Both the position numbers and the translations under genes were made by a program. Below are positions 38,673 to 54,340 of a DNA stretch of 64,000 nucleotides, in pieces. Below the pieces are notes generated by a model, which made no database searches, was not told where the DNA came from, and saw only the letters and a program-made list of their open reading frames with translations. This DNA is from Bugula neritina (taxonomy: Eukaryota; Animalia; Bryozoa): contig OZ037773.1 of NCBI GenBank assembly GCA_964035545.1, positions 5,919,751 to 5,983,750 of the forward strand. The letters run 5' to 3'. Each line of letters opens with the position of its first letter. The stretch's first letter is position 1.

Positions 38673-40405
38673 TGTGTTTCCGATTGCTGTAACTGCTTGC
38701 TGAATCTGTTTCTAAGACACACAAACTGTTTGTACACTGACTGCACTGGTAGACTATAAGTAATAGCAATTTTGGCACTGAAACATATTTCAACAAGCTT
38801 TTTAGTTGTAAAAGACAAAGCATGCATGAGCTACTATAATGCAATATTAAATTTTTACAGCAATCAGTTAATCCCTTTAGTTTAAGTTGTCTGAGAAAGA
38901 TGTGGTACAGTTACACTTACCTTTTATTTAATTTTATTATGGTAATAAATTAATTATTCCTAAAGAGTGAAGCCCAAAGTTGAAGGAAAAATATACAACT
39001 TTTAAAAAAAATATGCACACTTGCTGTAAATTTATATATTCTGGAGACCCAACTAAAGGATGTGCAGTCAAAAAAATCTCATGGAATGAAATTAGTTAAC
39101 AATGCAGAAGATTATGAAAATGTATATGGCTGAGGTCACATTGAGACAAAAGGTGACAGGTCAATTATCAAAGCCATTTAATTTTGTCAACATATTACTG
39201 TAACTATAATCAAAATTATAAAACCTATTTTCCACGGTGATATGTGAATTTTCCTATATACCATTCACCTGCATATAGCAACAACTAACAACAACACCTT
39301 AATTTGCCTAAAAACATAATGTATGTTATATATTATCTATCAAATCCACAGAGAAGTTATTAAAGCACAAAAATGCTTTCTTGAATATTCCCAAATATAT
39401 ATGCGTAAAAAATAATTTAAAGAACAAATGTTCAAACTGGTTGTTATTTCAGTTTAGGTTTATTGCTAATTGTTTTTAAAATTAATGAAGCTTGGTTAAG
39501 TTCTCAAGCTAAGTTTAATTTAAAATAGCATAAAAAATACATATTTTTTCTTCTTCTAACAAATGGGTCTGCTTAAATACAAAATCAACAATAGAAAATA
39601 AAAACCATGCAGGAGAGAATTTTTAAATTTTGGGTTGTAGCTTAATTTAATGGACTTGAATTTGCATGAGCTTATGGTTGTGGTTTCATTAGCAGCAACT
39701 GTTTCTAAACATCGAATGAAAAGTTCATTAGATACCTAGTAAATGTGGAATTACATCTTGTATCGTTCCCTGGGACCTTCCGTCAGCATTTTCTGTTAAC
39801 AAGTGTATGTTGCTCAGTGGTTGAAAGAATAGAGCAATAGTATATTGGCAGTATTCGTAATCTACTGACTCTAACAATATAGTCTTCAAGTTAAGCAAAT
39901 TTGTTGTAGCTGCTTATAAGTAAAAGAAGCTGTGGCAAAAGCAAAATAATATCTTATACAACATTATTTGCTTTATACCAAGATTTAGGTAAATTGTTAT
40001 AACAAAAGTAGTGCTATAATATATATGACAGTAAAAATATAAGCCTTAAGTTAAAGGCAACCAAATGGGTAATATTATTCATATTGTAGCTTCTATAAGT
40101 ACTTACTGTACAGTATACATGAAGAACTTTTTTTATCGGCATTATATTTAGTTGTTAAAAGGCATATTGCTAAAACAACACAATAGCTGGCTATGCTTTT
40201 GTTATTGAACTATTTCTGACATAGCTACTTTTGTAAGTGCTGACATAGGTATAAGCTAAATCATATATAAACAAGGCCAACGGTTTATTTATTTTGGTTA
40301 GTCCATCAACCTTGGAATGTACTAAAATAACTTTATCAAAAACAATATACATGCATACATGCACTCTACTTGATATGATAAAAGAATCTATAAAATTTTA
40401 GGCTT

Positions 40406-40880
40406 TTATAGGTTAAGCAAAACTTGCTTACAATTAAAGGAAGCCGCGCGAAAGTAAAGTGGCATCTTATACAACAAATCAAAAAACATGGAGATACTAG
40501 AATGTAGGAGTGTAACAGTAGCAAGTGAGTTAGAGATGTATAACATAGATATAATAGCTGCTCTGAGTGAAGGGTGAGTTTCCAATGCCGGTTCTATAAG
40601 AGAAGAAGCAGGATACAAGATCTCCTGGAGCAGCAAACCTGGCGGTGAGGTCTGAGAGTTTGGTGTAGCCATCGAAATAAAAAACAGTTTAATATCAAGA
40701 CTGTCAGAAGATTCAAAACGGCAGTGAATGATAGGATGATAGCAATCATATTACCACTCACCCAAATAATATCGGTATATATGCACCTATAACTATGACC
40801 AACAGTGTGGAAAATATCAATCAGTTTTAAGCTCAACTCAACGAAACACTTGCCAACATCCCAAACTCTGACAAAGTTAT
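40406..40880 (-). pseudogene. Highly diverged or frameshifted gene remnant in the family-A slot of the cassette
   Basis: Two overlapping hydrophobic ORFs (40594..40836, 40406..40672). The C-terminal LYFRAASFNCK resembles family A CKAAxC. The 3' flank (39900-40400) is homologous to the 3' flanks of A2 and A3, and it occupies the same position as A4 in the sister block. Confidence 0.4.
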
Positions 40881-40971
40881 CTTGCTTAAAGTGGCTAATT
40901 AATGCTCATATTGGCAGTGACTGTAACACCTGGGTATCTAGTAATATTGTGGAAGCTACATAGAATTATTG

Positions 40972-41011
40972 GGGGAAGTCCCCTTTCGTCAGCATTGTCT
41001 ATTAACACGTG
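40972..41011. promoter_or_regulatory. kB site (GGGGAAGTCCCC) + CGTCA + CACGTG module in the divergent intergenic region upstream of B1
   Basis: Matches the NF-kB consensus GGGRNNYYCC; module conserved with 54301-54340. Confidence 0.55.
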
Positions 41012-41337
41012 TATATTTCTCAGTGGTTGAAAAAATAGTACAATATTATTGGCAAATAGTAGAGACATTTTCCTAACCTACTAAATATAATAGCGGACTT
41101 CGTAACCATTGATCTGGTAGTATACAACACTTTTTTTCTACCATTGCAAAGAAAGGTGAGCTAAAAGTTTATATAATACTCCAGATACATTGTATCAGTC
41201 TCAGCATATAGTTTGAAGTACAAAGGGTCTGAAGTTTAGCTTATAATCCTAATAAATAATATTATTTGCCTAGTTTATTCTATAAATGAGTTAATGTACG
41301 TTTGAATACACTATGTGTTGCTGGGTAAATCTGAACT

Positions 41338-41700
41338 ATGATTAACACTGAGGCTTTCTGGTATGGAGTCCTAGTGTGCTTCACATGCTGTGTGCATGGA
41401 TGGACATCTGGCTTTACAATAGGATCAGTGTTGAACTGGAACAGTTGGAACGGGTCCTCGTGCAAATCGTGTCTTTCTTTTCTAAAGACAATGTGTTTTC
41501 TATTTGGTTGTTGCTGTTGTATGGACTTGCTTCAAAATTCTGAATTAAGTAACCACTGGGGAGGCATAGTTTTTGCTATATCTGGAATAGTTGGTCTGAT
41601 GACTGAAAAGACTTTCAGAGATTACAATAATTACGAGGTCATAGATATATTATTCATGCTGTTTCAATTTGTTATTATCCTAAAACGTGTTAGTGCATAA
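41338..41700 (+). CDS. Family B small ~4-TM Cys-rich protein, copy B1 (120 aa)
   Basis: Intact ORF with CCVHGWTSGFTIGSVL, LSFLK..GCCCCMDL and IVFAISGIVGLM shared with B2 and B5. Upstream donor AG|GTGAG at ~41155. Confidence 0.8.
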   Translation: MINTEAFWYGVLVCFTCCVHGWTSGFTIGSVLNWNSWNGSSCKSCLSFLKTMCFLFGCCCCMDLLQNSELSNHWGGIVFAISGIVGLMTEKTFRDYNNYEVIDILFMLFQFVIILKRVSA

Positions 41701-51859: not shown

Positions 51860-51871
51860 GGGGAATTCCCC
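51860..51871. promoter_or_regulatory. Palindromic kB site GGGGAATTCCCC upstream of B4
   Basis: Perfect NF-kB consensus about 70 bp upstream (minus strand) of a TATATA at 51783-51789. Confidence 0.55.
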
Positions 51872-52847
51872 TGCTTAAATATTCCAGTAAAAGATTTGTA
51901 CCAATTGTGCAAATAATAGAAATAACAAAGTATAGATTTGTTCATAGAAATCATTATATTATATACCTAATTAAATAAACTTTTGTGCATGTGTTCTAAT
52001 GTTTAAAACTTGTCTTCAATTGATTACAATAGTTAAAGACTGACCTTTTAAACACAGACCTCTGCTTCATAGTTTTTAGTTTAACTTCAACTGGAAATTT
52101 TCAAAACTATCTAAATTATCGTATGGGTTATAGATCAACTTATAATAAAAATATTCTCATCAATTATGGAACAGTTTTTATTCATTATGAAATAAGTTGA
52201 TCTAAAGAATGTAGTAGGAAGAAATATACAACCTAAAAAAAATTTTACAACTGCAACTATATTTAGAATTTATATGTTTCCAGCTAAGTATAGGGTTTTA
52301 ATAGAAATTAATTAACAATGCAGAAGATTATGAAGATGTAAGGCTGAGTTCACACCGAGGCAAAAGGTCACAGGTCAAATGTCAAGGGCCCTTTAATTTT
52401 GTCAACATTTTACTGTAATCAATCAAAGTTATAAAAGCTATAACTTCTACCCCCCCCCCCCCCCCAAAAGCATAATATACATATTATCTACCAAATCTAC
52501 AGAGAAATTGTTGACAAACAAAATGCTTTATTGGATATTCCTAAAAATATGTGTGTAAAATAATTTGAATAATCTAATCACTATTCAAGCTGGTTGTTAA
52601 TTTCAGTTTTAGTTAACAATTGTGCTTGCAATTAGTAAAGGCTAAACTTTCAAGCTGGTTAAAACTATTACAGTTTTGCAAAATTATACTCAAGGTTGCA
52701 TTTTATTTTGCTTTATTTAATGAAGATTTGACAAACAATTATTTTACCGGCAGTAAATCCCGATACAATAAAAGCATAGTTGAAATATTATTATGGAAAT
52801 ATAATATAATAAAGAGGACTTATAATGAACAAAAAAGCTGTAAGATG

Positions 52848-54006
52848 TCAATCAGATGTGTTCTTTTTTGCACATTGAGCAGCTTTACTGCTGACAATTA
52901 TAAAGAATGACAGCAGCATACAAATGTGAATACATTGAAAAATCCCTGCACATGTGATGGTGGGGCAACTCCCATTAGTCTTAGGTAACTCATCTACCTT
53001 GGTTGGTAATAGAAAGGATCTAATCTGCCATCCGACTGCAGCACCAACAAACGCTGCCAGCATGGCAAGATACATGTTCTGTCGATGAAGCATGTGTTTG
53101 AATTCAGCTTCATCGGAAGTCTCCGGGCATGTCAAAAGCCCGTTACTACTGTTCAAAGCCAATACTAGACAAGCTACAAGAACTAGGACGTAAACTATTA
53201 CAACTACAGCATAGAAGCAGCTTGAGCCTTTTCCTTTGAGGTTAGCTTTAAGGTTACAACTAAACCAACCCACAATGCACCCAATAAAGAATCCAAGTAA
53301 ATCCACTAAGACTTCTTGGGAGATGGCATCAGCGTAGGAGGACCCAATTTTACTCGAATCCAAGTCTGTATCAGCAATCTACAAGTTCACTGGCTTTTAC
53401 ATTTACTGGCTATTATATTTACAAAGCTGGTTAAGATTCAATAAAGAAATTTACAAAAACAAATTGTTTACACAATTGATGCATGCAAGGAATTGTCAAA
53501 AATGTCATTTAAAAAAAACACACTTTGAAAATGGACAGAGCAAAAATGGGCGCTCTATAATTCAGTGGAGCCCAAAATTGATAGCTTATTGCAAGTGTGG
53601 AAAATTTAGAATGTAGTATATCTATTTAGAAAAAAGAAAAATTAACTCAGTATTGAAGTAAGACTTAGTAAGACTATTTTATAGGCTTTTATATAATCTT
53701 AGTTAGTAGCTTTTCAATGATTTCAACTCCTTTTGCTACATAGTTAGCATCTAGGTTGGATATATGTAAATATATATGAATTACATCTGATATGATTAAC
53801 CAGGTATCAATTATTTAGCCCAGTTTGTTTAGAAATGCCTGATTTTGCATGATGTTAGCTCAACTTACTTTCACTGTGAAATTCACTGTGACTGTGAAAT
53901 TCACTTTCATTTAATGTTTTCGGTCATTTATAGTTATAGCCTATAAATGTTCATATCTTGCACAAAACTGGGATAACCTTAAATGACTTACCTGTTTGAA
54001 CTGCAT
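52848..54006 (-). CDS. Family A small ~4-TM protein, copy A4 (~181 aa; 15-nt first coding exon 54006-53992, main exon 53378-52848)
   Basis: ATGCAGTTCAAACAG|GTAAGT splices in frame to TGTAG|ATTGCT..; SYADAISQEV, GFFIGCIVGW, GLLTCP, LAAFVGAAVGW, LPK, SKAAQCAK. Confidence 0.78.
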
Positions 54007-54300
54007 ACCTGTAGGTTCTACTTGCTAAGTACAGATACTTGTGAGTTATAGTTTATATACTAGCCAAGTCAGCATCGACATCATGCATCTACTGCATGAC
54101 TGACTTCATCAAATCATAATAATTGAATGGTGCTATAAGCAGCTGCAAGCTGGGAGTGACTGAGTGCAATAGTTTCTGGATCTCGAGTTTGGTGTTACAA
54201 GTTATATACACCACAAACTGCCGCACTCAATCGCCTTTAACTCGAAGCTGCTTACAGAACCATGCATAATTAAAATTGTAGAAGCGACATAGAATTGATG

Positions 54301-54340
54301 GGGGAAATCCCCTTTCGTCAGCATCGGCTATTAACACGTG
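54301..54340. promoter_or_regulatory. kB site (GGGGAAATCCCC) + CGTCA + CACGTG module in the head-to-head region between A4 and B5
   Basis: Perfect NF-kB consensus GGGAAATCCC; spacing conserved with 40972-41011. Confidence 0.6.

Follow-up and report, generated by a model that had tools for sequence, protein, structure and literature searches.

Composite elements in which an NF-kB site is paired with a site for a basic leucine zipper (bZIP) factor occur in vertebrate immune genes, including the NF-kB/AP-1/C-EBP element of IL-8, the NF-kB/ATF element of E-selectin and the IFN-beta enhanceosome. Palindromic sites for p50 homodimers are exemplified by the H2TF1/KBF1 element of major histocompatibility complex (MHC) class I genes, GGGGATTCCCC, and in insects clusters of antimicrobial-peptide genes are driven by kB (NF-kB-type) sites, as in the Cecropin, Attacin and Diptericin promoters. 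This report concerns a 64-kb stretch of the Bugula neritina genome (the window, here and below, is that whole stretch), in which kB-type sites lie at the 5' ends of genes belonging to a 21-kb cluster that encodes two families, A and B, of small membrane proteins. At two family B genes, B2 and B5, a kB-type 12-mer is followed by TTT and by CGTCAGCA, the half-site of a second factor, and these conserved words are predicted, in combination, to be probably a real on-switch.

Materials and methods

The sequence scanned was the 64-kb window G000:C9:5919751-5983750, and genome-wide counts were made over 216,009,554 bases; the published Bugula neritina assembly comprises 216.00 Mb in 9 chromosomal pseudomolecules (PMC11480708). 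The consensus used was the 10-mer GGGRNNYYCC, the strict 12-mer pattern was GGGGAANTCCCC, and counts are given as strand hits. The sibling Bugula lineage used for comparison is represented by GenBank assembly GCA_010799875.2 and Joint Genome Institute (JGI) metagenomes 3300002729 and 3300003318; its synonymous divergence (dS) from the window is 0.17-0.27 and its non-coding DNA is ~12-18% different, a distance that lends itself to tests of constraint. The spliced model of A4 was inspected exon by exon, and the starts of A4 and B5 were inferred from sequence. A scan for bacterial-type promoters was discarded as irrelevant for an animal genome.

Results

The B2/B5 module and its conservation

The core shared by B2 and B5 reads GGGGAA(G/A)TCCCC followed by TTT-CGTCAGCA, and the pair lies approximately 30 nt upstream of a TATA-like GTATA(T/C) (Table 1). 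The 12-mers have the form GGGGA-AN-TCCCC and contain overlapping canonical 10-mers on both strands, and the CGTCA core of the adjoining bZIP half-site was found to be extended to GTCAGCA. A preliminary description of the window had listed motifs at 40972, 54301, 39772, 51860 and 50152 as Rel/NF-kB sites at promoters of the cluster. All were present at these positions, they fit the Rel/NF-kB consensus and they lie at the 5' ends of cluster genes; those at 40972, 51860, 54301 and 39772 match GGGRNNYYCC in full, and the A3 site at 50152 departs from it at a single position.

B2 and B5 are old duplicates whose coding sequences are 71% identical, compared with 60% for the intron and 39% farther upstream. 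Positions 40972-41011 and 54301-54340 were identical at 37/40 columns, which places them in the top 1.2% of 40-column alignment windows; at the intron's rate, the probability of such a match is about 1e-5. In the sibling lineage, contig L039 covers the whole A4-B5 interval, and the B5 module was found to be 39/40 identical (97.5%, top 5% of alignment windows), against 71% for the flank at 54271-54300 and 62% for the rest of exon 1. At the sibling's B2, 32 nt (ATTATTGGGGGAAGTCCCCTTTCGTCAGCATT) are unchanged, the homology ending 7 nt upstream of the kB site. A 23-mer is unchanged in the sibling at both B2 and B5, the chance of which is ~1% each at ~82% neutral identity. At the centre of the 12-mer, B2 and B5 differ (G/A) in both lineages alike, and therefore the similarity of the two modules predates the split and is not the product of recent gene conversion.

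Across the aligned copies, CGTCAGCAT is invariant in 6/6, including a decayed relic of the promoter that has no gene attached to it and which reads GGGACCTTCC, then GTCAGCA, at 39772. The kB word is GGGGAAGTCCCC, GGGGAAATCCCC or, in a B3-like copy of the sibling, GGAAAACCCC; this last copy gives a consensus match on the other strand (GGGGTTTTCC), joined to CTTTCGTCAGCA. Of the copies compared, B2 and B5 of the window and the B5 of the sibling have the E-box; the sibling's B2 has lost it, and it reads CGCGTG in the sibling's B3-like copy and CAAGTG in the relic. Because it is lost in one of these copies and altered in two others, the E-box is, judging from this alignment, outside the constrained core. 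The conserved kB-CGTCA-E-box module proposed earlier was therefore borne out as regards the kB and CGTCA(GCA) pair, and not as regards the E-box. The pair was more strongly conserved than its flanking sequence, whether paralogs or lineages were compared, and this twofold conservation, together with the decay in the gene-less relic, indicates that the kB word and bZIP half-site of B2 and B5 are under purifying selection. A scan of metagenome DNA for CGTCAGCA-N7-TTAACA-N-GTGTAT returned only GC-rich bacterial chance matches.

kB-type sites at B4 and A3

The 12-mer upstream of B4 is the palindrome GGGGAATTCCCC. In the JGI contig of the sibling this site reads GGGGAATTTCC, with two C-to-T changes, and is still a consensus match; in the GenBank contig it reads GGAAAATTCCC, which does not fit GGGRNNYYCC, whereas the sibling versions at B2, B5, the B3-like copy and the JGI B4 do. 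The B4 site was conserved no better than the sequence around it. The B4-type and B2/B5-type promoters cannot be aligned, and the proteins are ~27% identical. In B4 as in B2/B5, the rare 12-mer precedes the exon 1 donor by 172-219 nt, and the chance of its occurring in both corresponds to a probability of roughly 1e-3. Given promoters that cannot be aligned and proteins this far apart, the shared 12-mer has either been retained for a very long time or was gained independently, and both alternatives point to function.

The near-consensus site at A3 is kept 11/11 in the sibling, where it stands at the 5' edge of a ~100-nt conserved promoter block ending in the TATA box; the corresponding site of its paralog A2 is degenerate. 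Strict sites are confined to B2, B5 and B4, with a near-match at A3, and the earlier statement that the cluster is NF-kB-inducible goes beyond these data. No strict site was found at A1, A2, B3 or the B gene at 46423. One copy of a four-copy repeat unit (42694-42770, 44832-44908, 45176-45252 and 47534-47610) immediately precedes exon 1 of this last gene; the unit carries TGCTGACTCAT (Maf/AP-1-type) and, 30 nt away, GGAAATTCC-like words.

Candidate factors

Matches to PF00554 were found on chromosomes C9 and C1. A Rel-type gene with the loop RFRYECEGRFAGSILG is located on the same chromosome as the window (C9), at a distance of 1.2 Mb, and a p50-type gene on C1 has the loop RFRYEVEGKAHGGLQG, which contains His (AHGGL) and has Val at the usual Cys position. 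Rel-homology factors with a DNA-recognition loop are therefore encoded in the genome, and the loops are largely intact. In p50-type proteins the loop His reads the outer G of the five-base GGGGA half-site, and a palindrome with GGGGA half-sites is preferred by the p50-type dimer; the His of the p50-type loop would fit the palindromic 12-mers. The genome further contains two IRF genes, and no enrichment of IRF-type words was observed in the window (10 against 5.3 expected).

It is possible, though rather unlikely, that the promoter block is constrained because another factor reads it and that its likeness to kB is incidental, the constraint being centred on CGTCAGCA(T) and the G/C-rich palindrome serving an unrelated dimeric factor or as a spacer. 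Such an arrangement would account for CGTCAGCAT alone being invariant in all six copies, relic included, for the difference in the kB word between paralogs, for the 5'-weakened kB form tolerated in the sibling's B3-like copy and for the drift of the B4 site between lineages; GGGRNNYYCC is also a loose pattern, found as 61 strand hits per Mb. However, three paralog lineages and B4 retain a consensus match, with the changes falling at consensus-free positions (the centre, and Y-to-Y), a strict 12-mer is found again in a promoter not alignable with those of B2/B5, and the GGGGA palindrome is the general preference of p50-type proteins, for which a gene is present.

Transcription start and the A4/B5 interval

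The head-to-head arrangement of A4 and B5 noted earlier is supported by the sequence and by its conservation in the sibling. The predicted first exons or starts are ~270-350 bp apart, within the <1 kb that defines divergent genes, with the A4 ATG at 54006, the B5 module at 54301-54346 and the B5 exon 1 donor at 54495/54496, both sides being kept in the sibling. The kB site in this interval is ~30 nt from the TATA-like word of B5 and ~245 nt from the TATA box of A4. Within A4 intron 1, just upstream of exon 2, 61 nt (53457-53517) are identical in the sibling, no other perfect run of the 1.5-kb alignment being as long, and an 18-nt minisatellite at 53866-53925 with the IRF/PRDI-like word AGTGAAAGTG counts 2-3 units in the window against 5-6 in the sibling.

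In family B genes exon 1 is non-coding, and the protein is encoded by one further exon. Sibling contig L046 (run SRR4125604) misses exactly one GT..AG stretch of the B2 ortholog and is therefore a spliced transcript of that gene; it starts 19 nt upstream of the kB 12-mer. The sibling B2 allele was found to carry a ~2-kb insertion 8-30 nt upstream of the kB site (L048:1265-3246, opposite window positions 40935-40964), of which ~1.3 kb matches a repeat with hundreds of genome copies at ~81% identity, and the gene is still transcribed and spliced despite it. As the insertion is next to the site, the start of L046 may not be typical. By analogy with B4 and A3, and because GTGTATA is conserved, the B2/B5 module is most simply regarded as a proximal promoter, with transcription predicted to start ~30 nt beyond GTATA(T/C).

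The converse arrangement, in which the B2/B5 module would lie downstream of the start and act as a 5'-leader or downstream promoter element and not as an upstream enhancer, is considered improbable. The 5' end of L046 is in its favour, as are the poor TATA box downstream of the B5 module and the AT-rich TATA-like words 30-40 nt upstream of the B5 kB site. Yet the upstream region of the L046 allele has been replaced by the repeat-bearing insertion, the sibling's B5 lacks the upstream TATA-like word, having a 3-nt deletion there, but retains GTGTATA, the stretch at 54271-54300 is far less conserved between lineages than the module, and at B4 and A3 a strong, conserved TATA box follows downstream of the site. 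RNA structure in the leader did not exceed chance (z-scores -1.2 to +0.1).

Frequency of kB-type sites

A scan of the whole window with GGGRNNYYCC gave 13 strand hits at 5 loci (38594, 39772, 40972, 51860 and 54301), all within the gene cluster, and no match at 1-38593 or 54313-64000. Shuffles of the window gave an expectation of 1.1 strand hits, and 13 was reached in 0/100 shuffles. Across the genome 13,157 strand hits were counted (61 per Mb, 1.4x the reversed control), a density at which ~1.3 strand hits would be expected for the 21-kb cluster. When paralogy is taken into account, only 3/5 loci are independent (B2, B5 and the relic derive from one ancestor, B4 is separate and 38594 lies in a pseudogene), and the 10-mer excess in the cluster is therefore modest; enrichment over background was clear against shuffled sequence and was reduced to this level by the real genome density and paralogy. 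The match at 38594, which was not on the earlier list, is most likely a chance match. Further consensus kB words were observed in the sibling cluster (GGGACTTTCC at L047:14537 and GGGATTTTCC at L048:930), with no match at the corresponding places of the window, and are probably due to chance or lineage-specific.

The strict 12-mer is present in three copies in 13.4 kb of the window. Its genome-wide count of 152 strand hits, against 15 in the reversed control, is a tenfold excess, but 19/20 sampled palindromic sites belong to one short interspersed element (SINE)-like repeat, CAGTGGTTCCCAACCTGG-GGGGAATTCCCC-CCTAGGGGGGAATTTGGAC, and of the non-palindromic sites sampled (n=13) 4 are repeat copies and 3 more lie in one repeated segment on C6. 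Since it was traced to the repeat, the tenfold excess says nothing about function, and it was dropped as support. Non-repeat strict 12-mer loci are estimated, by extrapolation from the sampled sites, at roughly 15-20 in 216 Mb, of which 3 are in the window, where about 0.002 would be expected per 21 kb. The earlier argument from the rarity of such GC-rich 12-mers has to be treated with care, because genome-wide the excess of the palindrome is that of a repeat family. The repeat itself is ~330 nt long, resembles a SINE or a miniature inverted-repeat transposable element (MITE), starts CAGTGGTTCCCAACCTGG-GGGGAATTCCCC-CCTAGGGGGGAATTTGGACATTTTAGGGGGG (examples L008-L027, e.g. G000:C1:3495063-3495674) and is the source of nearly all exact GGGGAATTCCCC palindromes genome-wide; unmasked scans for kB motifs would be misled by it.

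It is very unlikely that the sites are without function, that is, chance matches multiplied by segmental duplication, with low local divergence passing for conservation. Two of the three 12-mers are indeed paralogous copies of one ancestor, one consensus match lies in the coding remnant of a pseudogene, long perfect runs are found elsewhere in the ortholog alignment (e.g. the 61 nt at 53457-53517) and the 10-mer excess is modest; nevertheless, the 37/40 identity between paralogs with introns at 60%, the two unchanged 23-mers at dS ~0.2, the decay in the gene-less relic and an independent strict 12-mer at B4, at the low density expected outside repeats, all speak against it. An origin of the kB-like words in the SINE-like repeat that carries GGGGAATTCCCC is scarcely credible, for although the repeat explains the tenfold excess and most of the sampled sites, the flanks of 40972, 54301 and 51860 are unlike it (CAGTGGTTCCCAACCTGG...CCTAGGGGGGAATTTGGAC), and the composite TCCCCTTTCGTCAGCA has exact matches in 216 Mb only at the window's two loci, B2 and B5.

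The gene cluster and its proteins

Family A comprises four copies, which all lie on the minus strand (33843-34328, 36663-37112, 49294-49797 and 52848-53378), and family B has five open copies, three on the plus strand (41338-41700, 43221-43673 and 54748-55128) and two on the minus strand (46423-46782 and 50761-51102), together with a pseudogene (B1) near 38376-38672. Within the genome both families are confined to this cluster. Their products are small, Cys-rich, multi-pass membrane proteins with three to five hydrophobic segments and without a signal peptide.

No Pfam family matches family A or B, and a word search with B5 found no homologs. Word searches with A1 and A4 and a profile search with family B over 1.84 billion representatives returned Bugula proteins only, bar one match to a low-complexity repeat protein, which was taken as spurious. 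The protein atlas gave no usable lead for either family, and an exact look-up of the window's own proteins found no entry in the protein collection. Over these searches families A and B are thus orphans, limited to Bugula neritina and the sibling Bugula lineage. A4 is 90% identical to KAF6022865.1, annotated as 'hypothetical protein EB796_018847 [Bugula neritina]' (GCA_010799875.2). The ratio of non-synonymous to synonymous divergence (dN/dS) against the sibling is 0.25-0.27 for A1 and A4, which are under purifying selection; B2 and B4 evolve faster (0.54-0.67). In A4 exon 2 (53363-53346), both in-frame ATGs of the sibling are TTG and ATT here.

A 4.3-kb tandem unit containing B4 and A3 (window 47400-51740) is missing from the GenBank contig (L047:11679-12400) and present in the window and in the JGI sibling contig L042. 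Upstream of A1 there are a 188-nt inverted repeat (34643-35018), 98% complementary and without a spacer, around an AT-rich microsatellite with an 8-nt period, and an exact 265-bp tandem duplication (35251-35780). The cluster is flanked at 56790-64000 by a dihydroxyacetone kinase gene (Pfam Dak1 on the GenBank ortholog, L066), where GC content is higher.

Table 1. Positions of kB-type sites, promoter words and gene parts in the window (a point denotes a feature listed without a strand).
Feature	Position	Strand	Remarks
GGGGGATCCC, consensus match	38594..38603	.	Within coding remnant of B1 pseudogene (family B)
Gene-less relic of B2/B5 promoter and exon 1	39776..39851	+	kB site with deletion; E-box CAAGTG; donor destroyed
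kB-type 12-mer GGGGAAGTCCCC	40972..40983	.	5' end of B2; identical in sibling
TTT + CGTCAGCA	40984..40994	+	CGTCAGCA (40987-40994) is a cyclic AMP response element (CRE) / Maf-recognition half-site; adjoins B2 kB site
CACGTG E-box of B2	41006..41011	.	Lost in sibling's B2
TATATTT, TATA-like	41013..41019	+	Downstream of B2 module; kept in sibling's B2; putative role
B2 intron 1	41156..41323	+	Donor GT at 41156; TG at 41322-41323, AG in sibling; absent from spliced L046
B2 coding sequence	41338..41700	+	120 amino acids, family B, HGW motif; sibling ortholog P0009 78% identical, dN/dS 0.54
Repeat unit (family D4) with TGGAATTTCC, ATGAGTCAGCA on the gene's strand	47534..47610	-	Upstream of B gene 46423-46782
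A3 open frame	49294..49797	-	Ancestral ATG is ATA at 49792-49794
Near-consensus site GGGAAATACCC (GGGTATTTCCC on the gene's strand)	50152..50162	.	~45-55 nt upstream of A3 TATA
B4 coding sequence	50761..51102	-	113 amino acids; ortholog P0005, dN/dS 0.67
TATA box of B4, ATATAAAT	51797..51804	-	Kept in GenBank contig L047; one change (ATGTAAAT) in JGI contig L042
Palindromic kB-type 12-mer GGGGAATTCCCC	51860..51871	.	55 nt upstream of B4 TATA box; not of the repeat family
A4 exon 2 (family A)	52848..53378	-	Orthologs P0002 and P0010 90% identical, dN/dS 0.27
Predicted A4 exon 1, coding part	53992..54006	-	ATG CAG TTC AAA CAG, then GT donor; in phase with exon 2; ATG, phase and donor kept in sibling
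TATATAAA box (TATA) of A4	54052..54059	-	Precedes A4 exon 1; kept in sibling
kB-type 12-mer GGGGAAATCCCC	54301..54312	.	Between A4 and B5; identical in sibling contigs L039 and L047
TTT + CGTCAGCA	54313..54323	+	CGTCAGCA at 54316-54323; adjoins B5 kB site
CACGTG E-box of B5	54335..54340	.	Kept in sibling's B5
Predicted B5 intron 1	54496..54704	+	Donor CAG|GTGAGC, acceptor TTGTAG|; homology with spliced B2 ortholog, repeat families D17/D18
B5 coding sequence	54748..55128	+	126 amino acids; GenBank relative KAF6033838.1 (P0011), same cluster as sibling protein P0004

Discussion

The motifs are interpreted here, with confidence that is evenly balanced, as selectively maintained cis-regulatory elements read by Rel/NF-kB at the 5' ends of genes in a cluster specific to Bugula, which encodes small membrane proteins. 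On this interpretation a Rel-homology dimer, either the genome's p50-type NF-kB or its Rel protein, would bind the 12-mer beside a bZIP factor on CGTCAGCA, 3 nt away, and the bound pair would switch cluster genes on after a stimulus. A4 would be read divergently from the same interval as B5, and B4 and A3 would each use a separate kB-type site ~45-55 nt upstream of a strong TATA box. From the motifs and their conservation we infer binding and the cooperation of a bZIP factor, and likewise inducibility, a response of the whole cluster and the exact transcription start.

Several observations weigh against this interpretation. The most invariant word of the module is CGTCAGCAT rather than the kB site, and a 12/12 ortholog match is reached by 20% of alignment windows. 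Both sibling versions of the B4 site differ from that of the window, and the site has been preserved no better than its surroundings; half of the cluster's genes are without a strict site. Genome-wide, the non-repeat strict 12-mer is without a clear excess over the reversed control, and the 10-mer reaches only 1.4x that control. The sole transcript contig (L046, sibling B2) begins upstream of the kB 12-mer, such that the module may be transcribed in that allele, and TATAC, which follows the B5 module, is a weak TATA-like element. Finally, there are signs of decay in the window, where the acceptor AG of B2 and the ancestral start codons of A3 and A4 have been lost from genes whose open frames are otherwise intact, and some of the putative targets may therefore be decaying.

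A broader proposal is offered only tentatively: in Bugula, a lineage-specific set of small membrane proteins that evolve fast would be hard-wired to Rel/NF-kB by a kB-TTT-CGTCAGCA composite of fixed form, as one arm of wider kB-driven orphan clusters in this genome. The present status of the sites is that of a well-supported prediction and not of a discovery of function. Among the literature matches listed for Bugula neritina and NF-kB, only bryostatin pharmacology was found, and no NF-kB target genes in bryozoans. If the broader proposal is true, the sites would be the first cis-regulatory point of access to the transcription that serves innate immunity or the response to symbionts in a bryozoan, here one with a bryostatin-producing symbiont. 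Working sites would supply short, conserved and testable reporter elements, candidate response genes with which immunity and symbiosis could be studied in a phylum where functional data are almost lacking, and a natural series (intact, drifting and decayed) for gauging constraint on kB sites.

The B2/B5 module resembles the vertebrate NF-kB and bZIP composites in that the kB site adjoins a bZIP site less than ~100 nt from a TATA box, in a compact layout with fixed spacing. It is unlike them in its targets, which are orphan bryozoan membrane proteins, in having the single half-site CGTCAGCA (Maf/CRE) in place of a full CRE or AP-1 site, and in its 3-nt spacing. With the H2TF1/KBF1 element the Bugula sites share two inverted GGGGA-type half-sites, and the Bugula genome has a p50-type Rel-homology domain gene with an AHGGL loop; that element is, however, an 11-mer, whereas the Bugula sites are 12-mers with a two-base centre and overlapping 10-mers on both strands. 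The insect clusters encode secreted peptides, whereas the Bugula products are multi-pass membrane proteins without a signal peptide. The likeness to the insect clusters lies in their organisation, for in both cases tandem, fast-evolving, lineage-specific small genes, some of them head to head, have a kB site near the TATA box.

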